Virus record (IMG/VR): IMGVR_UViG_3300046616_000314
Coordinates: 124,001 to 188,000 of that record
Reading direction: 5' to 3' (one strand)
DNA length: 64,000 nt
Position 1 is the first letter of the stretch, and every line of letters begins with the position of its first letter. The notes under the pieces are model-generated. The model was given only the letters and a program-made list of their open reading frames with translations, was not told the DNA's origin and did no database searches. A program made the translations under genes and the position numbers. Shown here one piece after another: positions 5,973 to 48,938 of the stretch.

Positions 5973-6253
5973 AACGCTTCCTACCCAAGTTCTACAGAGT
6001 AGACATTCCTCCGAAGATGGCTGGGGGTGCTTGGGTAGATTTGCCTTCGTCGCAACAACGATATTACTCAGTCTATTTCCATAACCCCGATATCCTCCAA
6101 TGGTGTGTTAGAGAACTGGGTTACGTTCCCGAACTGGTTCAACATGATCGCGGGCGGACGATTAGTGGTGGCTATACCCCTATCGTCTTCAATTATTATA
6201 TCAAGCTTGCCACCAAGCATGACGTTGTGATGTTCAAACTGAAATGGCTATAA
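5969..6253 (+). CDS. FxxEEDA-FKLKW family small protein
   Basis: WCVRELGYVP...ATKHDVVMFKLKWL. Confidence 0.75.
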   Translation: MKRFLPKFYRVDIPPKMAGGAWVDLPSSQQRYYSVYFHNPDILQWCVRELGYVPELVQHDRGRTISGGYTPIVFNYYIKLATKHDVVMFKLKWL

Positions 6254-6501
6254 TCCTCAGACCGATGGCTGACATGCCCGAAGATGGTACGGCAATTGCC
6301 GTCGTCTTCGATGATCTGATTCGCTTTGGTTCAGTCACAACGAATGCATCAGTGGTGAAATTCTTCGCGGATAACGCTTTCAATGAATGGTGTGACGCTA
6401 TGCTTTCGCGTCGTCCATATGTCCGCGACTCTCTGTATAGAGTTTGGTTTCAATTCGCCAATAGCGACGATGCCGCAATTTTCAAACTTACGTTCAAATA
6501 A
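6244..6501 (+). CDS. FxxEEDA-FKLKW family small protein
   Basis: QFANSDDAAIFKLTF. Confidence 0.75.
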   Translation: MAIILRPMADMPEDGTAIAVVFDDLIRFGSVTTNASVVKFFADNAFNEWCDAMLSRRPYVRDSLYRVWFQFANSDDAAIFKLTFK

Positions 6502-6860
6502 TGCCGAGTGCTCAATACATTAAGTGGCTGACGCCCGTTGAACCATTTGTTCATCGGGTTCCAGGGATCGTATCGTATCATCGGATGCTGTATCGGAAGA
6601 GTAATCCGCCGGTCGTGCCGCCCAAGTGCGCCAATACGTTTTATACGTATGCGGAAGACCGGCGGTTGGTGAATATTGCTCCGTTCATTGCTCCAAAGAT
6701 GGAAAGATGGTTGCAGGAGAAAACCGAAGGTAGATATTTCTTGGTCATGCGTAACAAGAACAACATTCTACCGGGTATCTATTTTGAAGATGAAAACGAT
6801 GCGGTCTATTTCGCATTGGCATGGAATACTAAGCAGAGACATCGACGTGAACACAGATAA
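6501..6860 (+). CDS. FxxEEDA-FKLKW family small protein
   Basis: YFEDENDAVYFALAW. Confidence 0.75.
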   Translation: MPSAQYIKWLTPVEPFVHRVPGIVSYHRMLYRKSNPPVVPPKCANTFYTYAEDRRLVNIAPFIAPKMERWLQEKTEGRYFLVMRNKNNILPGIYFEDENDAVYFALAWNTKQRHRREHR

Positions 6861-7140
6861 ATGGCGTTATGAATTCGATAAAGATAGGTGGTTCTCATCG
6901 CGTTATCACGGCAAGTATGAGAATTTCTCACTGATCGAAAAGCCACAAATCATGCAAGAAATAAAACTTAATGGTGGTGTTGTTTCAATCGATTGGGAGC
7001 GTATTGCCATATGGTGCCGGGATAAATTTGGCAAATTGCCACTGATCTTGACCCAAGGCGATTATCTAGGTATTGTGCTTCCAACGGACGAAGACGCCCT
7101 AATGTTTAGGCTCAAGTTCTCGGAATTGTTCAGTATATGA
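6847..7140 (+). CDS. FxxEEDA-FKLKW family small protein
   Basis: LPTDEDALMFRLKF; GTG start inferred. Confidence 0.68.
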   Translation: MNTDKWRYEFDKDRWFSSRYHGKYENFSLIEKPQIMQEIKLNGGVVSIDWERIAIWCRDKFGKLPLILTQGDYLGIVLPTDEDALMFRLKFSELFSI

Positions 7141-7493
7141 CTTCGAAAATCTTGGTTCACGTTAATAGACCAACACGAACCGCGATCCTTTCTAAGACTG
7201 ATAATTTCGCCTCTGAGGCGGATCGACCCGCCGTGCTTGATCCTGACTTCATTGACTGGTGTAAGACCACTCTACGGGGCTCCTGCGAAGCCGTGAAGGC
7301 ACGCATGGACCAATGCGGCGAGCTACCAGACGATTCTTTCACTAAGCGTCAGTTATGGTTCAATCAAGGCGCGCTGAATGCGAAGCCTCCGAATCCTCTG
7401 CATTGGTTTCATCGTCTGGTGCTGTATTTCGAATACGAAGAAGACGCCACCATGTTCCGTTTGAAGTGGAGCGTTCCCGAAAATGAGTTATAA
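7137..7493 (+). CDS. FxxEEDA-FKLKW family small protein
   Basis: YFEYEEDATMFRLKW. Confidence 0.75.
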   Translation: MTSKILVHVNRPTRTAILSKTDNFASEADRPAVLDPDFIDWCKTTLRGSCEAVKARMDQCGELPDDSFTKRQLWFNQGALNAKPPNPLHWFHRLVLYFEYEEDATMFRLKWSVPENEL

Positions 7494-7818
7494 CGTTCGT
7501 GGAATCGGCATAGTTACAGGCAGATCACTAACCGATAGGGATTGGAAGGGTGAGTGGAAGAACGTCGAAACTCTTCCGCCCTTTATTCTGTACCATTCGG
7601 GTCACTGGAAATATAGTTCCAAGATCGACTGGCAGGGTACTTTCATATGGTGTTCTGCGAACATCAAGAATTTCAGTGCCTTCGCCATCAGAACTGAATC
7701 ACTATCGGGTCCTAACGTTGGATGCCTGTCATTCGATACTGAAGAAGATCGCATGTTGTGCAGAATGAAATTTCCAGATTGGGATTTCATTCCGGCTGAT
7801 ATGGTGCTGCACACATGA
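7483..7818 (+). CDS. FxxEEDA-FKLKW family small protein
   Basis: SFDTEEDRMLCRMKF. Confidence 0.75.
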   Translation: MSYNVRGIGIVTGRSLTDRDWKGEWKNVETLPPFILYHSGHWKYSSKIDWQGTFIWCSANIKNFSAFAIRTESLSGPNVGCLSFDTEEDRMLCRMKFPDWDFIPADMVLHT

Positions 7819-8123
7819 GAATGCGTTACATCGTCCCAAGCGCGGCAGGAAACCGCCTAGTCTGGTATGGCGAATGGCTTAGGGTTTCTGCCGTTCCGCC
7901 GAATTCGCTCATTCTACCCACACAAAATGTGGCAGAGAGCGTTAATCTCGCACACTGGTTTGAATGCCAGAAATGGGCGAAGGAAAATTTTGGCTATTTC
8001 GAAACCTTCGGTCTCGATACAATAATAGTGCGCCAGTCGCCGCTTTGGGGCGCCCATTTCGAAACCGAAGATGACATGCTATTGTTCAAACTGAAATTCA
8101 ATCGATGGCAGATTTTCGAATGA
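7815..8123 (+). CDS. FxxEEDA-FKLKW family small protein
   Basis: HFETEDDMLLFKLKF. Confidence 0.75.
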   Translation: MRMRYIVPSAAGNRLVWYGEWLRVSAVPPNSLILPTQNVAESVNLAHWFECQKWAKENFGYFETFGLDTIIVRQSPLWGAHFETEDDMLLFKLKFNRWQIFE

Positions 8124-8452
8124 TTACCCGGCACGTTGCTCAACCAACGAAGAAACGTTGGCACAATACCGAACGGCAGTTCGTTCGCGTAAATGGGCAA
8201 GTGATCAAACACCTTTTACTAGATTGTGCCAGGAACCCGTATTTCTGGGTGCTAGTCGATATCATGCATTTTCAACCGTATGACGATACGTTTTGGTATG
8301 ACATGCTGCATTGGGGTAGCGAGAATTTTGAGAAGCAACCCGTGGTCCTGTTTCAGAATCATTATTCCGCTATTTTATTTTGCAGCGATGAAGACGCGCT
8401 GCTTTTTAAACTGAAATTCTCTGGGCGGTATACCGCGAGTATGAGCCAATGA
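8120..8452 (+). CDS. FxxEEDA-FKLKW family small protein
   Basis: LFCSDEDALLFKLKF. Confidence 0.75.
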   Translation: MITRHVAQPTKKRWHNTERQFVRVNGQVIKHLLLDCARNPYFWVLVDIMHFQPYDDTFWYDMLHWGSENFEKQPVVLFQNHYSAILFCSDEDALLFKLKFSGRYTASMSQ

Positions 8453-8778
8453 AAGGCGCAATCACATTATACTTTCGGGAGAGTCCCGAAGCGACGTGCT
8501 GGACCGTAAAGGATCGTGACAAATACGTCATGGTCAACGGTAAGACATTTCGCAATCTGGTAAAGGATTGCGTTAAGAATCCGTTTCCATATATCCTTAT
8601 CGATCATGACAAGCACATGGTTGATACGAATATTTGGAATGAAGTTCTGCCATGCACCAAATGGGAAAAATTTCCGACCATTTTGGCACAATGTCAGTTC
8701 ATCCTCGTGCTATTTCATAGCGAGGACGATGCCGTGATGTTCAAGATCATGTTCTCGAAATATTTTAAGGGAGAATAG
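8449..8778 (+). CDS. FxxEEDA-FKLKW family small protein (paralog of 8120-8452)
   Basis: LFHSEDDAVMFKIMF. Confidence 0.75.
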   Translation: MKGAITLYFRESPEATCWTVKDRDKYVMVNGKTFRNLVKDCVKNPFPYILIDHDKHMVDTNIWNEVLPCTKWEKFPTILAQCQFILVLFHSEDDAVMFKIMFSKYFKGE

Positions 8779-8780
8779 AA

Positions 8781-8944
8781 TGGTGCCGGTTGCAAGACTC
8801 GAACTCGCGACCTTCGGTTTTCCTTGATCCTCTAAGCTTTAGGCTCTCGGACCTTCAAAGGGGGAGAGACTTTCGTCTGCTCCCGCTTCAGTCAACTTAA
8901 TGACCTGTACAAAACCACTGCTCTACCAACTGAGCTAAACCGGC
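8781..8944 (-). tRNA. tRNA-Thr(UGU) with 88-nt insertion (putative intron) after position 37
   Basis: Reverse strand GCCGGTT-TA-GCTC-AGTTGGTA-GAGC-A-GTGGT-TT-TGT-A-[88 nt]-A-ACCGA-AGGTC-GCGAG-TTCGAGT-CTTGC-AACCGGC-ACCA; TATAAATA at 8963-8970 upstream. Confidence 0.88.
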
Positions 8945-8995
8945 GTACCGTTTCTATAATTATATTTATACTAAACTAATTTAGTCCTGTCAACA

Positions 8996-9238
8996 TCAAT
9001 CGACTTCGTTGCGACAAATTTTCACGATAGCCATGATGACGATGGAAACACCGAGAGCCGATACCAGTGCAATGATCGGATGGGTACACAACAACCCAAC
9101 GAATGCCAGGGCTCCGAAGAGAATCAGACCCACTAGAGCAAGTCCTACAAATAAGACTGCACCGATTGTTACGCATTCGACAGTGGATAGACGAAGGGCT
9201 TTAACAACCCGCTTGATATTTTGTAAGTTCATATCCAT
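8996..9238 (-). CDS. small membrane protein
   Basis: Two long hydrophobic segments. Confidence 0.6.
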   Translation of the reverse strand: MDMNLQNIKRVVKALRLSTVECVTIGAVLFVGLALVGLILFGALAFVGLLCTHPIIALVSALGVSIVIMAIVKICRNEVD

Positions 9239-9528
9239 TTGAGTTTAAAAAGGATTAGGGTATCGTCGTCAATGAATTCTAGGGCTAGACGCCATTCACG
9301 TCTTCCGTCTATCCCAAAATCTATAGTATCTAATTTTGGCACATATTTCAAATTTTCTTTACACCAATCGACAAAATTATCCGACAGAACAATAGCATTT
9401 GAACTGGTATGTGTTTTACCAGGGAATATTTTTGTCACGTCAACCACAAAGATGTCGTTGAACGGTGATCGCTTCTGATGATTTTCCGGCATGAACACAA
9501 AAACGGGCATTAGGTAGCTTTCAGCCAA
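9229..9528 (-). CDS. FxxEEDA-FKLKW family small protein
   Basis: WCKENL...EFIDDDTLILFKLKWI. Confidence 0.72.
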   Translation of the reverse strand: MAESYLMPVFVFMPENHQKRSPFNDIFVVDVTKIFPGKTHTSSNAIVLSDNFVDWCKENLKYVPKLDTIDFGIDGRREWRLALEFIDDDTLILFKLKWI

Positions 9529-9833
9529 TCATCGATAAAATCGGTTGCAAGGAAGGTGTCGGCGCCAAATTGGGCGTAACGCATCTTGAACATCGTTGCG
9601 TCCAGATCGGTTTCGAAACGAAGATGGAACACTTGGTTGCCGCCATTGTCATACTCTACAGTCGTCGTGGGGTATTTGATGCCCCTGCGGTCCATCCACA
9701 GTAGTACGGAGGTAATAAGATGGTATTCGCGAAAATGCTGTTTGGCTACCTCATCATAGGTCCATCGCCAGTCCAGCAATTGCTCACTACCGTTTTCGTT
9801 AGTCTCGTGAACCCTTACAACGGTATCAGCCAT
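9510..9833 (-). CDS. FxxEEDA-FKLKW family small protein
   Basis: RFETDLDATMFKMRY. Confidence 0.72.
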   Translation of the reverse strand: MADTVVRVHETNENGSEQLLDWRWTYDEVAKQHFREYHLITSVLLWMDRRGIKYPTTTVEYDNGGNQVFHLRFETDLDATMFKMRYAQFGADTFLATDFIDDWLKAT

Positions 9834-10129
9834 CAGAATTTCAACCTACAAAGCAGCATGGATTCTGCGGAGTCTAATTCAAGTAGGAGCTTACGGCAAA
9901 GCCCTTTATTGAAAATAGGTCGCAAGATTGGTGTAATTTCGTTGGCTTCACACCAACAGGTAAATTCCTCCGTCAGCCGAAATACCTCGATAACATTCAA
10001 ATGTCTACTCAGTCGCCCGCTTTTGGTTATTTTGAAGCCAGCCAAATGTTGTTTCGTGGGATCAAGTTCCCACACCTTGCTTCCAAGTTCGGATACATCC
10101 AACTCGTATTTCACAGTTTGTTTGCCCAA
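9833..10129 (-). CDS. FxxEEDA-FKLKW family small protein
   Basis: WCEAN...ELDSAESMLLCRLKF. Confidence 0.68.
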   Translation of the reverse strand: MGKQTVKYELDVSELGSKVWELDPTKQHLAGFKITKSGRLSRHLNVIEVFRLTEEFTCWCEANEITPILRPIFNKGLCRKLLLELDSAESMLLCRLKF

Positions 10130-10383
10130 TAGAGTTTGAACAGGGCTGCGCTATCGGTGTTGTCGAACACGATGAGAGGTTTCCACGTATTAACTTCCGC
10201 GTAGACCTTATTACCATCTGCCACGTGTTGGAAGGAATACCCGTTGACGCCATGCTGTTCGCACCATTTGACGAACGCTTGGGTAGGAAGAATGACGCGA
10301 TCATGTACGCGAGCCGCCCAAATTTCCCATCTAGAATTGAGAGTAAGGGCGATCTCGTTCACAAACGTTTCTCCGAAAACCAA
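10111..10383 (-). CDS. FxxEEDA-FKLKW family small protein
   Basis: WCEQHG...VFDNTDSAALFKLYW. Confidence 0.72.
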   Translation of the reverse strand: MVFGETFVNEIALTLNSRWEIWAARVHDRVILPTQAFVKWCEQHGVNGYSFQHVADGNKVYAEVNTWKPLIVFDNTDSAALFKLYWANKL

Positions 10384-10742
10384 GAAGGATAGGCGTTTAT
10401 AACACGTTTTTGAACAAATGCCATAAAATTACTACTAGAATCTCTGGAATTTCTGAACTGGAACGCTTGATCCTGAAGCGTTACTAACAGAGTGGAGTAT
10501 TCGAGTGCGATATCTTCATAGCTCGTATGGAAATCGTAGTTCTGGGTCAATACGATGATGGCAGCAATTAGATCACTATCATCCACGTGTTCGAATTCGC
10601 GGGGATCATATTCAATTTCTTTAAGAACAGCGTTCGCCAGAGCTTTGAAAGCGTTGCGATCATGTGGCTCTAAACGTTCAGAAAAACTCTCCATATGAGA
10701 ATGGAGTACACTAAGATGTTTCATACCAATACTTATTAACAA
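10359..10742 (-). CDS. hypothetical protein
   Basis: ORF embedded in the minus-strand array, lacks the family motif. Confidence 0.55.
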   Translation of the reverse strand: MLISIGMKHLSVLHSHMESFSERLEPHDRNAFKALANAVLKEIEYDPREFEHVDDSDLIAAIIVLTQNYDFHTSYEDIALEYSTLLVTLQDQAFQFRNSRDSSSNFMAFVQKRVINAYPSWFSEKRL

Positions 10743-10948
10743 AACTTCAATTTAAAATATACAATATCGTCTGGGTTAGTAAGTGTGACTTCGTATAGAA
10801 AGCTAGCAAGTTTAGATTGTCTATAGAAAGTATAGCGTTCTCTGAGAAATGCTCGAATACTAGACAAGCATTCGATTTGATCATAGAACAGAAAACGCCC
10901 CGGATCGGAGGGGCTTTCCCAAGCGCGTTCAACATCAATCATAACCAC
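10736..10948 (-). CDS. FxxEEDA-FKLKW family small protein
   Basis: TLTNPDDIVYFKLKF. Confidence 0.68.
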   Translation of the reverse strand: MVMIDVERAWESPSDPGRFLFYDQIECLSSIRAFLRERYTFYRQSKLASFLYEVTLTNPDDIVYFKLKFC

Positions 10949-11238
10949 TTCAACTTAAACAGCATGGCTTCTTCATCAGTCTCAAACCACATGGAAATGT
11001 GGTCGGGAAACATATCGTTTTGTGTGCGGCGGTTCATAGCAGTTTCGAGAAACGTCCGCCCGATTTCTCCATCACGTTTACGCTCGTTGAGCCATTCGTG
11101 AATTACGTCATCAATCATCGGATACCACAGACCATCGCGCCAGACGAACAGGAAGGCGGTTGTACACCCCGGTCCACCGTATGCGGCATGGTGGTGTTGT
11201 GGAATTTTCAGTTCATACACGTGAAATATACTCAGCAA
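10939..11238 (-). CDS. FxxEEDA-FKLKW family small protein
   Basis: WFETDEEAMLFKLKWL. Confidence 0.72.
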   Translation of the reverse strand: MLSIFHVYELKIPQHHHAAYGGPGCTTAFLFVWRDGLWYPMIDDVIHEWLNERKRDGEIGRTFLETAMNRRTQNDMFPDHISMWFETDEEAMLFKLKWL

Positions 11239-11491
11239 ATTTCAAACGGAATATGACTGCATCGTTATCCGAGACGAAACATGCGGCTGATCGAAACCGA
11301 TACGCGGCGGTAGACATGCTGCGTTCCATCGGTGATTCGTAAATAAAATCATAGCGATAATCTACGACTGCCAAATCTTCGGTTTGGGTTGCGCACCATG
11401 CTTCCATCGTCTGCCGGGCTTCGAAAGACAGAACCTTGTTTAGGATGATAGGCGTAAACCGTTTCCGATCTTTGTGCGCGTTTGGGTCCAT
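11213..11491 (-). CDS. FxxEEDA-FKLKW family small protein
   Basis: CFVSDNDAVIFRLKF. Confidence 0.72.
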   Translation of the reverse strand: MDPNAHKDRKRFTPIILNKVLSFEARQTMEAWCATQTEDLAVVDYRYDFIYESPMERSMSTAAYRFRSAACFVSDNDAVIFRLKFAEYISRV

Positions 11492-11569
11492 ATCTCACCA
11501 TACCTTAACGAAATTGAAATTGCAAATTTTCGTAGGGTTCGCTATGGTAAATCATTGATTGGAATTGAT

Positions 11570-11788
11570 ATGCTTATCTCGTTTGAAGAAATGAATGACT
11601 GCCACGAATTCACTGTGGATCACACCTTGATCGCGAAAATCGTCAAGGAACGTGTGTGCAACCATGACTATTGGGTCATCCACCCTCAAGAAGGGTTTTC
11701 GTTCCGTACTGTCGATAAGATGTCTCACCTGACAATCAAGGGTGCATTTGACATTTGCTGGAATGAATGGGTGAACTATGTGGACTGA
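11570..11788 (+). CDS. hypothetical protein
   Basis: ORF from internal ATG (MLISFEEM). Confidence 0.5.
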   Translation: MLISFEEMNDCHEFTVDHTLIAKIVKERVCNHDYWVIHPQEGFSFRTVDKMSHLTIKGAFDICWNEWVNYVD

Positions 11789-12059
11789 TCGTGACGGCAA
11801 CGAAATCGAAATCGAGACGATGAGCGACCGCTATTTGCTTAATGCGCAGCGATATGCGAAGGCGCGTCTCAAGAAAGTGCGCGAGCAACTGAAGGAAGCC
11901 CAACAGTTTTGGATGATGGTCCAGGGCGATCATGCAGAACGCGAACTTGAGCAACTGATTGAGCGTGGCGAAGATACCGTGTTCATGTTAGAAACCGGAA
12001 TGCGTAAGATGGAAGCTGTCATGCTGTCGCGCGGACTGTCACCGTTACCACAGGTCTAA
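11778..12059 (+). CDS. hypothetical phage protein with coiled coil
   Basis: WTDRDG...I..MSDRYLLN N-terminus resembling common phage hypotheticals. Confidence 0.65.
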   Translation: MWTDRDGNEIEIETMSDRYLLNAQRYAKARLKKVREQLKEAQQFWMMVQGDHAERELEQLIERGEDTVFMLETGMRKMEAVMLSRGLSPLPQV

Positions 12060-15761: not shown

Positions 15762-16291
15762 AGGATGTAGGACGCTCACTTACGAATTTGCTCCGCGAGG
15801 AAGCTAAACGCCGTCCAATCGCGGCTGATCTAGTCAATCGCATCGGTGAACTTACCGATGAGGAAATTGATACCGTGAAGGTTCCGTTGCCTTGGTATCG
15901 CAAAGCGTTGCGTGAACTTAAAAAAGAATACATGCGTGGCGATGGTCGCCACGAGGGTTTGAACAAATGGATTCTACGAAATTTCGTAGAAGGAATTGCC
16001 CCCGATCCCGTTGGTAATTTACGCCGCTGGGAACATGCCGATATGTTCATTGACATCGACCGTGGTAATCAAATCGAAGTCCGCACGGGTGAATACATTT
16101 GGTTCGACCCCAAGGGCGGTGTTTGGATTGGTACAATCTACGCCAAGGTGATTGATTACAAATTGCAACACTCGATTGATTTGGGTAGCGCAACTAAGTG
16201 GGCATACAAACAAAAATGCCGGGAACGACTTGAAGGTCATTTCCCGGCATTTGATAGTGCTAACCGTAAGGGTATTACTATCGGTCGTTAG
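15758..16291 (+). CDS. hypothetical protein
   Basis: 177-aa ORF, ATGA-coupled to the previous gene. Confidence 0.6.
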   Translation: MKDVGRSLTNLLREEAKRRPIAADLVNRIGELTDEEIDTVKVPLPWYRKALRELKKEYMRGDGRHEGLNKWILRNFVEGIAPDPVGNLRRWEHADMFIDIDRGNQIEVRTGEYIWFDPKGGVWIGTIYAKVIDYKLQHSIDLGSATKWAYKQKCRERLEGHFPAFDSANRKGITIGR

Positions 16292-16923
16292 ACCAAAAGA
16301 GTCTTCAGACGAGCAAGGTAAGCCTTGCGGTCATCTAGACCATTCGTGCCACCATTGATCTTCTTGGTGATCGAAAGAACGTCGTCCTTATCGGCGAAAT
16401 CATTCATCTTGCGATCTGTCCAATAGAGGCAGGCGGTCAGGGTTGCGATTTCGGGATCAGCAGCCTTTTCAGGAAGCTTCGCCAGATCGATACCCAAACG
16501 CTTGCCGTAGGCAACGTAGTTGAAATAGCCGGTCAATTGGAAGATACCGCGCCCGCGATACTTCGGACCCATGCCGACTTGGTTGTTACCCAAATCCTTA
16601 CGGAAGTCGTACTTCTGAAGGTAGTCATCAAAACCGTCATGGTTCGCATCCTTACCCGAACCCAACTCTTGAAGATAGCGGAAGCCGCCAGTTTCATGAG
16701 CCGCCTGGGCGATGAAGTGCGAAATACGAAGACCGGTGACGATATTGTACTTCGGGAAGTCGGCTGCGAAAGCACGTCCTAGCAGGACGCTCAACGAACC
16801 CAAATCCTTTTTGACTGAATAATTGATGATGGCGGTGAAGGTCTTAGGACCAAGATCACCATCCAAAGTACCAGGGGAGAAGCCAGCAGCCACAAGCTTC
16901 TTCTGAATTGCTAAAACGTCCAT
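16288..16923 (-). CDS. endolysin: peptidoglycan-binding domain plus glycoside hydrolase family 19
   Basis: IQKKL...DGDLGPKT binding motif; AQAAHETGGF, YRGRGIFQLTG..NY, INGG.NGL.DR GH19 motifs; AGGAG RBS before ATG 16923. Confidence 0.9.
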   Translation of the reverse strand: MDVLAIQKKLVAAGFSPGTLDGDLGPKTFTAIINYSVKKDLGSLSVLLGRAFAADFPKYNIVTGLRISHFIAQAAHETGGFRYLQELGSGKDANHDGFDDYLQKYDFRKDLGNNQVGMGPKYRGRGIFQLTGYFNYVAYGKRLGIDLAKLPEKAADPEIATLTACLYWTDRKMNDFADKDDVLSITKKINGGTNGLDDRKAYLARLKTLLV

Positions 16924-16961
16924 ATCCATACTCCTAGTTAAGTACGGATATTTAGTCTGGC

Positions 16962-17189
16962 TTAGCTTTTCAGAATGTCGCTCGCGTAAGCAGATTGGCG
17001 AGCGCGGGCATAAGCGTCCAGACCGGCTTGTTCGTAGAACTTGCCGATGGTGGCAACAGCCGGGAAATACGTCGCAAACAGCTTGGTCCAAGCTTCAACG
17101 TGCTTAGCATATTGCGCGGTGCCTTCAGCGAACAAAGCGGTTGCTTCGTCACTGAAAGTCTTGAGATCATCTTTAGTCATATTGTGCAA
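16962..17189 (-). CDS. hypothetical protein
   Basis: Helical ORF overlapping its neighbour. Confidence 0.5.
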   Translation of the reverse strand: MHNMTKDDLKTFSDEATALFAEGTAQYAKHVEAWTKLFATYFPAVATIGKFYEQAGLDAYARARQSAYASDILKS

Positions 17190-31114: not shown

Positions 31115-32191
31115 ATGCGCGCATTCGAACTGTTTGAAGAAAAGAAAACCCTCTACGTCTCTCGTAAGCTGAAGAACGGCGAGGCGTTAGTGAAATGGGC
31201 TAAGGATCAAGGCTTTACTGAATGCCTAGCCCCATCGGAAATGCATGTCACGATTGCATATTCCAAGAGCAAGATCGAATGGAGCGATATGACTTCAGCC
31301 GAGAAAGAGCTTACGGTCAAAAAGAAATCTGGCAAGCGTAAGATCAAATGTTTCGGGGAAGACAAAAACGCAGTCGTTTTGGTTTTCGATAGCGAGGAAC
31401 TTAAGGATCGCTGGAAAGAATTTAAAGATGAGCTAGGGGCATCCTGGGACTTCCCGACTTATCATGCTCACGTAACCATTACCTACAACGGTCTTCCCGA
31501 AGGTGTGAAGCTCAAAGACATTACGCCCTATGAGGGTCCTTTGGAATTTGGTCCCGAACGCAAGTCGGAGATCACCAAGGATTGGAAGGGTAAGACCAAG
31601 ACGAAGAAACTCACGGAATCATTTCGTCTGGCTGACGTAGATACCGAAGAACTGTACCAGACCTTCAAGAAATCCTATGAAGCCGAAACGGGCGCAAGCT
31701 GGTCTAAGGACAAGATGCTAGAGCGGGCGCGCAATTGGGAATTCTTCGGAGAACCTACAGGCTTCGTTGCGATTCGTCGGCAAGCCTCTGGGATGGTGAA
31801 ACTCGTTGCTACGGCAGGCGACTTCAAAGGCATCATGCGCGGCTTCTCAGAACTTCAGAACGAGGGTGGTCCGTTGTGGGGCGCCGTCTCTAATCAACTA
31901 GCGAGAATCGCCAAGAGCCGGGGTATGATCGTGCCTCACCTGATGCCGGGTGGTCCGACCTTCATTAAGCTGATGGTTCCCATGATCCCGGCAGCGGTGT
32001 TCGGTGGGTTCGAACCAAAGATCAATGACGATGGTGGCATGACATTTGAGTATGATGATGTAGGGGCAGCTACCAAGTATTTGATTGGTAACAAAGAATA
32101 TTTCAAAATGGCTATTGCCAATAACAATCTTTCATCGTATATTTCAAAGGTTCCTGGGTTGAAACAATTCCTAGCTTTGATTGGATTATGA
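31115..32191 (+). CDS. Acb1-like 2H phosphoesterase (anti-CBASS-like) fused to a second domain
   Basis: Two HxT motifs (MHVTIAYS, HAHVTITY) plus GASWDF and PYEGPLEFGPE; MRAFELFEE leader; GCTAAATA upstream. Confidence 0.75.
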   Translation: MRAFELFEEKKTLYVSRKLKNGEALVKWAKDQGFTECLAPSEMHVTIAYSKSKIEWSDMTSAEKELTVKKKSGKRKIKCFGEDKNAVVLVFDSEELKDRWKEFKDELGASWDFPTYHAHVTITYNGLPEGVKLKDITPYEGPLEFGPERKSEITKDWKGKTKTKKLTESFRLADVDTEELYQTFKKSYEAETGASWSKDKMLERARNWEFFGEPTGFVAIRRQASGMVKLVATAGDFKGIMRGFSELQNEGGPLWGAVSNQLARIAKSRGMIVPHLMPGGPTFIKLMVPMIPAAVFGGFEPKINDDGGMTFEYDDVGAATKYLIGNKEYFKMAIANNNLSSYISKVPGLKQFLALIGL

Positions 32192-36121: not shown

Positions 36122-37474
36122 ATGATTCGACTGCACAATTCGTTGTCACGGAAGTTGGAAGACTTCAAGCCGATTGATTCTAATCGGGTGACGATGTACG
36201 TGTGTGGTGCGACCGTTTATGACACCCCTCACCTGGGTAACGCCCGTCCTGCTGTTGTGTTCGACGTGCTGTTCCGGCTGTTGCAACACGCCTATCCCTT
36301 GGTTGAGTATGCGCGAAACTTCACTGACGTTGATGACAAGATCATCGCCCGGTCGAACGAATCCGGCGAACCCATCAATGAACTGACTGAACGGGTCATC
36401 CGCGAGTATCACGCCAGCATGGATGCGCTGGGCGTGGCGCGACCGACTTATGAGCCGCGCGTGACGGGCAACATGGCTCCGATCAAGGGCATGATCTCTG
36501 AACTGATTATGTCGGGGCACGCCTATGTCTCTGAAGGTCATGCACTATTCGACGTGAAATCATTCCCGTTGCATGGATCATTGAGCGGACATCTTCAAGA
36601 AAACTTGGATGTTGGACACCGCGTGGCTGTTGCCGACTATAAGCGCGATCCGGCGGATTTCGTTTTGTGGAAGCCTGCCAAGGAAGGCGAGCCCGCTTGG
36701 GACTTCCCTTCGGTTAGTTCGGGTCGCCCTGGCTGGCACATTGAATGCTCCGCGATGATCAAAAATGTTTTCGCGGACAACACCATTGATATTCATGGCG
36801 GCGGCGCGGACCTTCGGTTCCCGCATCACGAATGCGAAATGTCACAGAGCCATGCGGCGAATGGTCATCATTTAGCTAACTACTGGCTGCACAATGCCAT
36901 GGTTACGCTTGGTGGAAGCAAGATGCAAAAGACGGGTAGTCATATGATTACTGTCGATCAAATTTTGCGAAACAATGATGGGGCTTCAGTTCGCTTTGCA
37001 TTGCTGTCAAGCCATTATCGGTCGCCTCTGGATTGGTCGCCAGAACTACTCGAAAACAGCCATGGGACGCTTGCTAAGTGGCATAAGCTACTTTCGGCGA
37101 GCGATGCTCCTGCGGAGGCTAACAACGTCTCTACGGCGATCCTGAAGCCTCTGTATACCGATCTGAACGTCCCTGGCGCGGTGGGTGCAATCCATAACGC
37201 GCTGGCGACTGTCACGGATACGGTTGCCGCCGGGGTTCGCTATGCTGCTTCGGTCATGGGCTTCGATCTCAGTCAGGAAGCCAACCTAGCGTTCTTGAAG
37301 GAACCGGAGTTGGAGCCGCAATTGGTTCTGGAAATCGAGCGTTTGCTAGGCGAACGGGCTGTTGCCAGACAAAATAAAAATTTTGCGGAATCGGATCGGG
37401 TTCGCGAACTGATCGCCAACATGGGGGTCGTTGTGGAAGACGGTCCCGAAGGCACGACGTGGAAAGTCAAATGA
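36122..37474 (+). CDS. cysS: cysteinyl-tRNA synthetase
   Basis: YVCG.TVYD..HLGNAR, NFTDVDDKII, DF.LWK, GRPGWHIECSAM, DIHGGG.DL.FPHHE, KMQKT (KMSKS variant), C-terminal anticodon-binding domain. Confidence 0.95.
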   Translation: MIRLHNSLSRKLEDFKPIDSNRVTMYVCGATVYDTPHLGNARPAVVFDVLFRLLQHAYPLVEYARNFTDVDDKIIARSNESGEPINELTERVIREYHASMDALGVARPTYEPRVTGNMAPIKGMISELIMSGHAYVSEGHALFDVKSFPLHGSLSGHLQENLDVGHRVAVADYKRDPADFVLWKPAKEGEPAWDFPSVSSGRPGWHIECSAMIKNVFADNTIDIHGGGADLRFPHHECEMSQSHAANGHHLANYWLHNAMVTLGGSKMQKTGSHMITVDQILRNNDGASVRFALLSSHYRSPLDWSPELLENSHGTLAKWHKLLSASDAPAEANNVSTAILKPLYTDLNVPGAVGAIHNALATVTDTVAAGVRYAASVMGFDLSQEANLAFLKEPELEPQLVLEIERLLGERAVARQNKNFAESDRVRELIANMGVVVEDGPEGTTWKVK

Positions 37475-41111: not shown

Positions 41112-42299
41112 ATGGCTGATTTTTCCGTTGAAGTGGTGCGGATCGCTGCACCCGTTACCGATCACCCGAACGCTGACCGCCTGTCGCTGATTCAAATCGG
41201 CGGCTACCTCTGCATTTCCGCCAAGCTGGACGACGGCTCGCATCGCTACGAAGAAGGCGATCTGGTCGTCTACGTTCCCGAAGCGTCGGTGGTTCCTGAG
41301 TACATCCTGAAGCCGGGCTTCTGGGATGAAGCCAAGGGCAAGGGCATCCTGGCGGGGTCGAAGGGCGACCGCGTTAAGGCGAAGCGTCTGCGCGACATTT
41401 TCTCGCAAGGCATTCTGCTGGCTGTCGAATTCGACATGGGGGCTCCGACTGTTGGCGACGATGGTTCGCTTGATCTGACTCCGCACTTCTACATCACCAA
41501 CGAAGCTGGTGAGCGACTGAAGGTGGAAGCCGGTGATAACGTCGCCGAATTCCTGGGCATCACCAAGTACGAGCCGCCGGTTCCGGCGTGCCTCGCGGGT
41601 GAAGTCTGCAACATCTTCGGCAAGACCGCCAAGTATGATTTCGAAAGCATTCAACGGGTCACTGACCTGTTCGAAATCGGCGAAGATGTCATCGCCACCG
41701 AAAAGATTCACGGCACGAACAGCCAGATCGGCTACGTTCCGGGTCTGAACCATGAAGAACTGTTCTTCGACGGCAACCTGTACATCGGTTCGAAGGGTCT
41801 TTCGGCTCAAGGTCTGGTGATGAAGAACAACGAAAAGAACAAGACGAATACCTACGTCCTGGCTCTGACGAACCTTCTGGATCAAGGCTTCGGCGACAAG
41901 ATCAAGGTGATTTCGGATCGTTTCGACGGCGCCGTTGTTCGCGTCTTCAGCGAAATCTACGGCAAGGGCATTCAAGACCTGTCGTACGGTACGGACAAGC
42001 CGACCATCGCGGCGTTCGACATTCAAATCAACGGCGAATACGTCGCCTACGATCTGATGGTTGAACTGGCGACGGAACTGGGCATCGCCGTGGTTCCGAC
42101 GCTGTACGAAGGTCCCTACGACCTTGAAGCTCTGATCGTCCATCGGGACGGCATTGACACGATTTCGCAAACCAACGTGCGCGAAGGCATCGTGATCAAG
42201 GCGCGGAACGGCGGTCGTCACGTCCACCACGGTCGTAAGATCGGTAAGTGGGTGAGCCCGGCGTATCTGGAACGCAAGAACGCCACCGAACACAACTAA
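41112..42299 (+). CDS. ATP-dependent RNA ligase, DRB0094/Rnl2-like
   Basis: N-terminal HPNADRLS domain; motif I TEKIHGTN, SEIYG.GIQ, FDI, REGIVIK. Confidence 0.9.
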   Translation: MADFSVEVVRIAAPVTDHPNADRLSLIQIGGYLCISAKLDDGSHRYEEGDLVVYVPEASVVPEYILKPGFWDEAKGKGILAGSKGDRVKAKRLRDIFSQGILLAVEFDMGAPTVGDDGSLDLTPHFYITNEAGERLKVEAGDNVAEFLGITKYEPPVPACLAGEVCNIFGKTAKYDFESIQRVTDLFEIGEDVIATEKIHGTNSQIGYVPGLNHEELFFDGNLYIGSKGLSAQGLVMKNNEKNKTNTYVLALTNLLDQGFGDKIKVISDRFDGAVVRVFSEIYGKGIQDLSYGTDKPTIAAFDIQINGEYVAYDLMVELATELGIAVVPTLYEGPYDLEALIVHRDGIDTISQTNVREGIVIKARNGGRHVHHGRKIGKWVSPAYLERKNATEHN

Positions 42300-47575: not shown

Positions 47576-47893
47576 ATGTTGAGCACCACACTTATCACCA
47601 TCGCGGTCATCATTGTCATGATCAGCACGGCTGTTTCCATTTTTGCCTTTTTGGTATGGAATGGTGCAATCACTGATCGTGATGACGCAGGGATAATGAT
47701 TTTTGCAAGCTGCGCGGGTGGAGTTTTCTTCTTCCTGTCGATCCCTGCTATTTTTATCATTTTGATTTTCAGAGGCTTGTTCAAGCTTTTTGAAGGTTTC
47801 TTCACTGACGTTATTTGGTATAGCCAGCAACGTAAGAAAGAAATCACACAAGCAGAAGAAGCACACAAAGCTAAACTTAAGCAAAGAAAATAA
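47576..47893 (+). CDS. membrane protein
   Basis: Two transmembrane segments. Confidence 0.6.
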   Translation: MLSTTLITIAVIIVMISTAVSIFAFLVWNGAITDRDDAGIMIFASCAGGVFFFLSIPAIFIILIFRGLFKLFEGFFTDVIWYSQQRKKEITQAEEAHKAKLKQRK

Positions 47894-47894
47894 T

Positions 47895-48938
47895 ATGCTG
47901 ATCGAATCTAAGAAGTATTACGACTACGACGACGTTTTGATTCTACCGAAGAAGACTTTTCTCAAGTCACGTAATGACGTTTCTTTGACGGTACTCTATA
48001 AGACCAAGCATTCGCAACGTTCTTTAGTAGGCGTGCCGATCTTTGCGGCAAACATGGACACCACAGGTACGTTTGAAATGGCGAGAGCCCTTCAAGCGGA
48101 ATCCATGTTCACCTGTCTGCATAAGTTTTACACGGCTGAAGAGATCATCGCCCAATTCGATAGCGGATTGTCTTATAATTTTGCGTTCGTAAGCATCGGC
48201 AAGTCGGCTGCGGACATCGAAAAATTTTCAAAGATTCACGACAAATATCCTAACGCGCATCTGTGTATCGATGTTGCCAACGGCTATACCGACGACTTCC
48301 TTACCTTTGTGAAGGAAGTCCGCGCAACGTTCCCGAAGACCGTCATCATGGCGGGCAACGTTGCTACGGATGACATCATTGCCGAATACGACGCAGCGGG
48401 TGTCGATATCGTCAAGATCGGCATCGGTCCTGGGAACTTCTGTCGTACTCGCACGACGGCTGGTGTTGGTGTTCCCCAACTGTCAGCGGTTATGGACACG
48501 TCGGCTGCTGCTGATGGCTATGGCATCTTGATTTGCGCCGATGGCGGGCTGAATGAATATTGCGATTTCGCGAAGGCATTTGCTGGCGGCGCCAACTTTG
48601 TCATGGCTGGTTCGATGTTCGCTGCCCATGAAGAATCGGGTGGTGACAAAATTACCGAGAACGGCGAGACGTTCAAGATCACCTACGGAATGTCGTCTGA
48701 GACTGCCATGAACAAATATTATGGCAAGGTGGATGGCTATCGCGCATCCGAAGGTCGAACCGTAAAGGTCCCGTATAAGGGTCCGGTGGCGGACACTGTT
48801 CGAAATATCCTGGGTAGCTTGCGTAGCACGCTGACTTATACTAATATCGCCAAGCTGGATAATTTGTACATGGCGAAGATGATTGTGGTCAACAATACCA
48901 TTAATCGCAGCCACGTACGGAACACGATTGGGAACTGA
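47895..48938 (+). CDS. guaC: GMP reductase
   Basis: DYDDVLILPK..SR, AANMDTTGTFEMA, CIDVANGY, KIGIGPG..C.TR, ADGG, YRASEGRTV; no CBS domains. Confidence 0.9.
   Translation: MLIESKKYYDYDDVLILPKKTFLKSRNDVSLTVLYKTKHSQRSLVGVPIFAANMDTTGTFEMARALQAESMFTCLHKFYTAEEIIAQFDSGLSYNFAFVSIGKSAADIEKFSKIHDKYPNAHLCIDVANGYTDDFLTFVKEVRATFPKTVIMAGNVATDDIIAEYDAAGVDIVKIGIGPGNFCRTRTTAGVGVPQLSAVMDTSAAADGYGILICADGGLNEYCDFAKAFAGGANFVMAGSMFAAHEESGGDKITENGETFKITYGMSSETAMNKYYGKVDGYRASEGRTVKVPYKGPVADTVRNILGSLRSTLTYTNIAKLDNLYMAKMIVVNNTINRSHVRNTIGN

Follow-up and report, generated by a model that had tools for sequence, protein, structure and literature searches.

Can a phage make use of a threonine tRNA gene that is broken, immediately after its anticodon, by a folded segment longer than the tRNA itself? 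The question is raised by a locus in the 561,116-bp, about 97% complete IMG/VR virus record IMGVR_UViG_3300046616_000314, of which we analyzed bases 124001-188000, a stretch of 64,000 nucleotides referred to here as the window. An earlier sequence-only reading had described a tRNA-Thr(UGU) gene at 8781-8944 with an 88-nt structured insert at tRNA position 37/38. That observation stands. The interpretation attached to it is only partly supported, as the reading named four mechanisms without choosing among them (a new ribozyme, protein-dependent splicing, a nuclease-activated pro-tRNA, or a decoy), and our evidence, in the absence of RNA data and of homologs for covariation, does not distinguish these four. 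The features on which the following sections rely are given here in window coordinates.

8781..8944, minus strand: whole interrupted tRNA-Thr(UGU) gene, 164 nt, with an encoded CCA at 8781-8783
8908..8944, minus strand: 5' exon, tRNA positions 1-37 (acceptor 5' strand, D arm, anticodon-stem 5' strand, U33, UGU, A37)
8820..8907, minus strand: 88-nt insert, 50% G+C, single copy in the genome
8890..8905, minus strand: predicted hairpin P1, GGUCA/UGACU with a 6-nt loop UUAAGU
8857..8889, minus strand: predicted hairpin P2, 13 pairs (GAAG.GGGAG.AGAC / GUCU CUCCC.CUUU) with a GAAA tetraloop, one C bulge and one C-C mismatch
8826..8853, minus strand: predicted hairpin P3, GGUCC..GAGC/GCUU..GGAUC with an internal loop and a CUAAA loop
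8781..8819, minus strand: 3' exon, tRNA positions 38-76 (A38, anticodon-stem 3' strand, variable loop AGGUC, T arm, acceptor 3' strand, A73, CCA)
8965..8993, minus strand: sigma-70-like promoter, TTGACA (8993-8988), a 17-nt spacer and TATAAA (8970-8965), leaving a leader of about 14 nt before the tRNA
41112..42299, plus strand: phage RNA ligase, with an N-terminal OB domain plus nucleotidyltransferase, Naegleria Rnl-like; a candidate sealing enzyme, not shown to act on this RNA

An interrupted tRNA-Thr gene of alphaproteobacterial type

Standard tRNA finders skip this gene. Neither ARAGORN with default settings nor Rfam at gathering thresholds detects it, and the unspliced gene scores only 16.7 bits against the tRNA model (RF00005). 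ARAGORN with introns allowed reports a gene at exactly 8781-8944 (genome 132781-132944), but it places the intron one base off and calls it His(GUG), a reading that we rejected because it has no homolog support and gives a distorted 78-nt cloverleaf. A Tyr-like GUA reading of UUGUACA, prompted by the 9-mer UGUACAGGU shared with a second odd tRNA-like gene of this genome, was also rejected, as its stem is weak and consists entirely of wobble pairs and the Thr homology is decisive.

Homology settles the identity. Deletion of positions 38-125 of the gene (window 8820-8907) gives a 76-nt sequence that default ARAGORN calls tRNA-Thr(tgt), a cloverleaf with a 7-nt anticodon loop (U33-UGU-R37) and with G1-C72 and C2-G71 present. 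A blastn search of 50,697 phage genomes matched only the 5' exon, which is 97% identical to annotated phage tRNA-Thr genes, and positions 1-48 equal the uninterrupted tRNA-Thr(UGU) of Rhizobium phage RHph_X2_28B except for position 6, which is compensated at position 67. The 31-mer spanning the junction occurs uninterrupted in 47 GTDB species-representative genomes, all of them Alphaproteobacteria, a result far beyond chance. The nearest of these, a Rhodobacter metagenome-assembled genome, is identical at 71 of 76 positions, and all five differences lie in the T stem and preserve pairing, including two double compensatory changes. The T stem of the phage gene, GCGAG...CUUGC, differs from that of all bacterial homologs. 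The insert is therefore exactly 88 nt and lies between positions 37/38, or 36/37 because of an A run (the 1-nt slide that had been claimed), and the exons have evolved as a folded tRNA.

That the insert might be an assembly artefact had been raised in advance as a way for the observation to fail, and this is excluded: a Logan contig of the probable source run, a rhizosphere metagenome, reproduces 6001-12000 with zero differences at even depth. In addition, a 209-nt contig from a wastewater run covers 8869-9052 with 12 differences and one gap, a span that takes in upstream DNA, the 5' exon and the first 39 nt of the insert. Every listed change falls upstream of the tRNA (an inserted T after 8950, and substitutions at 8979, 8981, 8985, 8999, 9011 and 9014), so that 8899-8944 is unchanged while the 78 nt upstream carry 7 changes; if the 9% divergence were uniform, 46 unchanged bases would be expected about 1% of the time. 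The remaining 6 differences lie within about 30 nt of the alignment ends and could not be placed, and the comparison rests on a single low-depth contig. A relative therefore carries the same insertion, at least in its first 39 bases, and the interrupted gene looks conserved.

The claimed late-type promoter TATAAATA is not supported, as this octamer occurs 13 + 7 times in 561 kb against about 11.6 expected per strand and is not enriched; it is not a credible T4-type late promoter. The same stretch reads better as a near-consensus sigma-70-like promoter, which our promoter scan passed over only because it requires T at position 6 of the -10 hexamer. The substitutions in the wastewater relative fall in the spacer (8979, 8981, 8985) and its insertion in the leader (after 8950), not in the hexamers. 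No terminator follows the CCA, and a role for P2 as an intrinsic terminator was rejected because only 3 U follow the stem. The encoded CCA, the RNA ligase at 41112 and the paralogous ORF arrays on both sides of the gene, all of which had been claimed, were confirmed.

The insert matches no known intron or ribozyme family

The three hairpins that had been described were confirmed by minimum-free-energy and centroid structures. The insert alone has an MFE of -31.8 kcal/mol against -22.2 +/- 3.1 for dinucleotide shuffles (z = -3.1, with 3 of 1000 shuffles as good), and the whole precursor has z = -3.8. In the precursor fold the anticodon stem is extended by U32-A38 and by U33 and U34 pairing with the last two A of the insert, as in protein-spliced pre-tRNAs.

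No Rfam family accounts for the insert. As the sequence-only reading had held, it is too short for and unlike a group I intron, being less than half the minimum size of that class, with no Intron_gpI match even at E <= 10 in 8600-9100; moreover, with borders fixed by homologs it ends in ...GGAA or ...AGGA, and thus in A rather than the terminal G of group I introns. It is not a group II or group III intron either, as P2 gives only a weak, non-significant match to a model of domain 5, a 34-nt hairpin with an AGC triad and a 2-nt 3' bulge (17.4 bits against a gathering threshold of 61, E = 0.36), the bulge is on the wrong strand, and the insert begins CAGGU and lacks GUGYG. Known small self-cleaving ribozymes (hammerhead, twister, twister-sister, pistol, hatchet, HDV-like, hairpin) gave no match at E <= 10, and a hand check for the hammerhead core fails, with CUGAAGC instead of CUGANGA and 5 extra nt before GAA. 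A K-turn in P3 was considered and rejected. Although the insertion site is that of archaeal and eukaryal introns, the earlier judgment that only a relaxed, non-canonical bulge-helix-bulge is present was upheld by hand inspection: with the splice sites fixed, the central helix would be U32.G123, U33.G122, U34-A121 and G35xA120, at best one Watson-Crick and two G.U pairs plus a mismatch, there is no outer helix h', and the MFE structure places the 3' site inside a helix. The insert is not a repeated, MITE-like element, as blastn-short, nhmmer and covariance-model searches found no second copy in the genome.

Covariation of the insert across phages had been proposed as a test, and it could not be assessed because every search for homologs came back empty. 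The exact 23-mer of hairpin P2 was absent from viral contigs; an exon-intron junction pattern found nothing in viral contigs and 13 hits in metagenome contigs, all chance matches in non-tRNA sequence; Thr exons separated by 61-121 nt were found in neither viral nor genome contigs; and a D-arm-to-T-arm pattern sized for an 88-nt insert returned only tandem ordinary tRNAs. A covariance model of the insert found nothing in 100 tRNA-rich viral loci or elsewhere in the phage's own genome, and in 151 alphaproteobacterial genomes it gave two chance hits, neither in a tRNA gene. Relatives reached by synteny, through the gp15-like and virion proteins, are 2-28% complete fragments at 34-45% identity with no interrupted tRNA. 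A transcript lacking the insert had likewise been named as the evidence to look for. Only three sequencing runs hold related sequence, with relatives in a wastewater and a freshwater run; the only "RNA" run holding a relative is probably DNA, and no RNA run shows the region; no joint that skips exactly the 88 nt was seen, and the apparent joints across the insert all carry replacement letters, meaning that they are other organisms' ordinary tRNA-Thr genes.

Genomic context and possible fates of the insert

The record holds 39 matches to the tRNA model, including a weak class II Tyr(GUA) and a Phe gene that ARAGORN missed, and together they cover every amino acid except Thr. Thr is represented only by interrupted genes, with no uninterrupted Thr tRNA, although it makes up 6.8% of codons in long ORFs. 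Host signals are bacterial, namely a tRNA-His with encoded G-1 and C73, an endolysin, T4-like gp15 and adaptor proteins, Acb1, and the alphaproteobacterial exons. The phage lacks the splicing endonuclease EndA (PF01974, for which the control matched only archaea), RtcB, Tpt1 and the PNK3P family. It does encode two RNA ligases (PF09414). The window ligase at 41112-42299 (PF09414 and PF21189; phrog_968; PDB 5cot/6vt4) resembles the Naegleria nick-sealing ligase, whereas the other, at genome 319543-320559, has a weak N-terminal HNH match and is followed, with a short overlap, by a polynucleotide kinase-phosphatase (Pnkp) with a HAD phosphatase and a P-loop kinase (PF25109 plus PF13671), which hits T4 Pnk and Pnkp1 structures (PDB 4xrp and 1ltq); the adjacent pair spans genome 319543-321538. 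The chemistry for rejoining anticodon-loop ends is therefore on board, although action on the ends of this tRNA was not assayed. Such repair sets are, however, generic anti-defense equipment of jumbo phages (PMC7824862), and their presence is permissive, not specific, evidence.

We tentatively favor, at somewhat less than even confidence, the view that this is a live tRNA-Thr(UGU) gene whose insert is a true intervening sequence. In this view, the sigma-70-like promoter would yield a 164-nt precursor, RNase P would mature its 5' end, an unidentified endoribonuclease from host or phage would cut at both junctions while the acceptor, D and T body holds the halves together, Pnkp would heal the ends if the cuts leave cyclic phosphate and 5'-OH, and one of the phage ligases would seal the anticodon loop, as T4 Pnkp/Rnl1 do for nuclease-cut tRNA. 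To decode, the insert must be excised and the halves rejoined, and the product would join ...UUUUGUA to AACCGAAGGUCGCGAGUUCGAGUC (UUUUGUA|AACCGAAGGUCGCGAG). A protein-dependent route is the most likely because the insert fits no self-splicing class. What our analysis demonstrates is the gene, the exact insertion site, the folded insert, the intact and structurally constrained exons, and the presence of Pnkp and two Rnl; transcription, excision, ligation and the identity of the acting enzymes are inference, transcription and 5' maturation by RNase P being ordinary inference and the steps from the cuts onward hypothesis. The intact exons, their compensatory changes, the absence of any other Thr tRNA, and the relative that keeps the exon and the same insert start while its flank has diverged make a removed intervening sequence or a functional chimera more likely than a dead gene. 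Against splicing stand the lack of RNA data, the orphan status of the insert, the absence of any identified endonuclease candidate, and the fact that no non-group-I tRNA splicing is known in bacteria.

Two alternatives seem to us unlikely, and equally so. The RNA may remain unspliced, the tRNA body serving as a processing and stability scaffold (RNase P, CCA end, tRNA fold) that displays the structured module, or the molecule may be a non-decoding tRNA-Thr mimic, perhaps a decoy for a tRNA-targeting host nuclease or for a synthetase or modification enzyme. The compact insert with its GNRA-capped 13-bp hairpin and the absence of splicing machinery or a ribozyme signature agree with this, and conservation in the wastewater relative fits it as well as it fits splicing. 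The same genome also has a second tRNA-like gene (genome 194503-194609; 51.9 bits to RF00005) with 41 nt in place of 6 loop positions, which no single deletion turns into a canonical anticodon loop, suggesting that this phage makes expanded tRNA-like RNAs. However, the loop bases flanking the 88-nt insert are exactly those of a working tRNA-Thr, the insert sits exactly where protein-spliced introns sit, and without splicing the phage would lack a Thr tRNA while encoding tRNAs for all 19 other amino acids. Alternatively, a host-derived gene may have been disabled by an 88-bp insertion and not yet have decayed, as the orphan insert, the lack of a known removal mechanism in bacteria and the closeness of the exons to bacterial sequences (71/76, so that acquisition could be recent) would allow. 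This reading is weakened by the pair-preserving exon changes, by the insert landing on 1-2 of 75 possible junctions, the one used by spliced introns, by a fold better than 997 of 1000 shuffles, by the near-consensus promoter and encoded CCA, and by the diverged relative that keeps exon, insert start and promoter hexamers while neighboring bases changed.

A new minimal self-splicing or self-cleaving ribozyme, perhaps leaving ends that Pnkp and Rnl join, is less likely still. The three-hairpin fold with its GAAA tetraloop, the absence of a protein endonuclease, and the suitability of Pnkp plus Rnl for 2',3'-cyclic phosphate and 5'-OH ends speak in its favor, but no Rfam ribozyme or intron matches, the insert does not end in G, two precise cuts from 88 nt have no precedent, and no conservation data exist. 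An archaeal-type intron cut by a splicing endonuclease, suggested by position 37/38 and by anticodon-intron pairing, is very improbable and largely refuted, as no hBHBh' can form, EndA is absent from the phage record (the host genome is unknown) and the host signals are bacterial.

Relation to other interrupted tRNA genes and to known systems

Short insertions in otherwise canonical phage tRNA genes proved to be common. A scan of IMG/VR for a common D arm and T loop separated by 50-80 nt, a spacing that neither ordinary nor tandem tRNAs can give, returned at least 115 loci, and about 95 of 116 matches are interrupted tRNA-like genes, with inserts of 20-55 nt in otherwise canonical phage tRNA genes. 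They comprise eukaryote-type tRNA-Tyr introns on giant-virus contigs; a tRNA-Thr with a 42-nt hairpin inside the anticodon loop, on 342-kb and 246-kb contigs; a family with a conserved CCUCCCUCAUGG...GGGCCAAAA module; and a large family in which a roughly 45-nt element (a closing helix, an A-rich run, a 6-8-bp covarying hairpin and an invariant ACAGCAA) sits after tRNA position 28/29, not 37/38, in tRNAs with many different, otherwise canonical anticodon arms. This last family is present in cultured Erwinia jumbo phages, where it is annotated simply as a 122-nt tRNA-Lys(ttt), as in pEa_SNUABM_50 (MT939488 295747-295868). None of these resembles the 88-nt insert in sequence or by covariance model, but they show that non-group-I insertions in phage tRNA genes are widespread and, as far as our literature searches could tell, undescribed.

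The only tRNA introns known in Bacteria and their phages are self-splicing group I introns, and enzyme-dependent splicing at 37/38 is regarded as an archaeal and eukaryal trait. A working phage tRNA with an 88-nt non-group-I insert at that site would therefore imply either a new splicing activity in a bacterial system, with phage RNA-repair enzymes doubling as splicing ligases, or a new class of tRNA-scaffolded RNA. It is possible, though we consider it doubtful, that phages or their bacterial hosts possess a splicing route that is neither group I self-splicing nor the EndA pathway, in which an unknown nuclease or a minimal ribozyme removes short structured inserts from phage pre-tRNAs and Pnkp/Rnl "repair" enzymes act as the splicing ligase; the present insert would be one instance, and the many insertion-bearing tRNA genes in IMG/VR and in cultured Erwinia jumbo phages, which bring the general question within reach of the bench, would be others. 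As standard tRNA finders skipped this gene, phage tRNA repertoires are being under-counted.

Among known systems, the protein-spliced tRNA introns of Archaea and Eukarya (EndA/Sen endonuclease plus RtcB or Trl1 ligase) share the insertion site one base 3' of the anticodon, a size range in Archaea that includes 88 nt, pairing of anticodon bases with the intron, and a healing-and-sealing set of the Trl1/T4 type, but here the context is a bacterial phage, there is no bulge-helix-bulge motif, and the phage has no splicing endonuclease, RtcB or Tpt1. Bacterial group I tRNA introns, such as those of Azoarcus tRNA-Ile, cyanobacterial tRNA-Leu(UAA) and Agrobacterium tRNA-Arg, also interrupt the anticodon loop, and Alphaproteobacteria are hosts of such introns (PMC3984707); they are, however, roughly 200 nt or more, with a P3-P9 core and a terminal G that are lacking here, where the 5' exon ends in A (or in U without a pairing guide sequence). 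In T4, Pnkp and Rnl1 repair anticodon-loop breaks made by PrrC, and the chemistry needed to rejoin two tRNA halves is the same, but that break is a host attack on a normal tRNA, whereas here two cuts by an unknown enzyme would be needed, and such repair sets are common in jumbo phages whether or not introns are present (PMC7824862). The intervening sequences of 23S rRNA in Alphaproteobacteria and enterics are roughly 100-nt structured inserts in a stable RNA gene, removed post-transcriptionally by a host nuclease, RNase III, in the likely host class; they leave the RNA fragmented, which a tRNA anticodon loop cannot tolerate, and the helices here are short for RNase III. Finally, engineered tRNA-scaffold chimeras are artificial, and no natural phage example is known to us, but they have the same architecture as the unspliced molecule, an intact acceptor, D and T body carrying a foreign structured module in place of the anticodon loop.

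Additional atypical tRNA genes in the same genome

In addition to the interrupted tRNA-Thr gene of the window, the same phage genome carries several other unusual tRNA or tRNA-like genes, all of them outside the window (genome coordinates; L136 is the handle of a locus from this genome):

194503-194609 (+), equivalent to L136:1504-1610, a second expanded tRNA-like gene
195100-195175 (+), equivalent to L136:2101-2176, a tRNA with an abnormal anticodon loop
202177-202262 (-), 202279-202357 (-) and 6247-6323 (+), three further odd tRNA genes

The second expanded tRNA-like gene scores 51.9 bits to RF00005, has 41 nt in place of 6 anticodon-loop positions, and sits between a terminator and a T run, with no encoded CCA. 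No single deletion gives U33. The extra part contains a perfect 6-bp hairpin with a 7-nt loop GUGUACA, and the 5' part of the gene resembles tRNA-Gly. It also shares the 9-mer UGUACAGGU with the exon-insert junction of the window gene, although this may be chance.

The tRNA at 195100-195175 (47.6 bits) has the anticodon loop GCCCUAAC, which reads as 8 nt, or as 6 nt after a 6-bp stem, and contains CUA; it is possibly an amber suppressor or a frameshift-type tRNA. Of the three further odd genes, one is a GCA-anticodon tRNA with a long variable arm, sitting next to the Ser tRNA cluster, one is a weak (20.3-bit) class II tRNA-Tyr(GUA) with a 3-bp D stem, and one is a Phe(GAA) tRNA with a 12-nt D loop that is missed by ARAGORN.

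Protein-coding genes and a terminator resembling hairpin P2

Further protein-coding features recorded in the genome and in the window are as follows:

genome 319543-321538 (+), equivalent to L138:1006-3001 (L138 being another locus of this genome), an RNA repair cassette
window 31115-32191 (+), 36122-37474 (+), 47790-48938 (+) and 16288-17091 (-), an Acb1 anti-CBASS domain protein, a full cysteinyl-tRNA synthetase, an IMPDH/GMP-reductase-family protein and an endolysin
window 6676-8778 (+) and 8996-11491 (-), small ORFs flanking the tRNA

The RNA repair cassette consists of an RNA ligase (PF09414) with a weak N-terminal HNH match, followed with a short overlap by a Pnkp whose domains are in the order HAD phosphatase then kinase. 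The small ORFs that flank the window tRNA were found to be weakly paralogous, within the plus-strand array and partly across the two convergent arrays; for example, comparison of 8105-8452 against 8449-8778 gives E = 4e-15. None of these ORFs matches PHROGs or Pfam.

A search of 151 alphaproteobacterial genomes also revealed a bacterial intrinsic terminator (AAAGCGGAGCAGAUGGAAAUCUCUCCGCUUUUUUU) that closely resembles hairpin P2 of the 88-nt insert (1520-1560 of L320, an alphaproteobacterial genome locus). We judged this to be a chance match, as E is about 0.02 per genome across the 151 genomes.

Interrupted and expanded tRNA genes in other phages

Three further kinds of expanded tRNA or tRNA-like gene were detected in other records (L handles denote individual loci):

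L226:6678-6792 (-) and L259, IMG/VR contigs of 342,181 and 245,963 bp, a tRNA-Thr gene interrupted inside the anticodon loop
L289, L223, L260, L263, L283, L291, L305, L310, L318 and L277, IMG/VR loci, a recurring expansion of the anticodon region in tRNA-framed genes
L235:4989-5107 (-), L211:329-446, L205:10535-10649, L222, L228, L245, L282, L294, L304, L306, L307, L315 and others, and L319:1498-1619 (Erwinia phage pEa_SNUABM_50, MT939488 295747-295868), a conserved element inserted in the anticodon stem

The L226 and L259 loci represent a second, unrelated case of a tRNA-Thr (UGU or CGU) gene that is interrupted inside the anticodon loop. Here the insert is a 42-nt long hairpin (AAAGCACAC...GUGUGUUUU) at 34/35-35/36, within jumbo-phage tRNA arrays, and the Rfam tRNA model scores it at 53.2 bits with a long insertion. 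The L289 group of loci shares a different expansion with the motif CCUCCCUCAUGG.GAAGGGCCAAAAYGCCGGGA. No deletion gives a canonical U33 loop in this group, and so perhaps these are tRNA-like RNAs rather than interrupted tRNAs.

In the third group, a conserved element of about 39-54 nt is inserted after tRNA position 28/29, inside the 5' strand of the anticodon stem, and we found 32 distinct members. The element has a closing helix, an A-rich run, a 6-8-bp hairpin whose sequence covaries, 2 nt, and then an invariant ACAGCAA. No Rfam family other than tRNA matches it, and no literature on it was found. It occurs in many phage tRNAs with different, otherwise canonical anticodon arms, including GCU, UGG, CCU, GCA, UCC, UUU, UAU, GAU, UGU, UAC, GUU and more. 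The element is also present in cultured Erwinia jumbo phages, where it is annotated only as a 122-nt tRNA-Lys(ttt).
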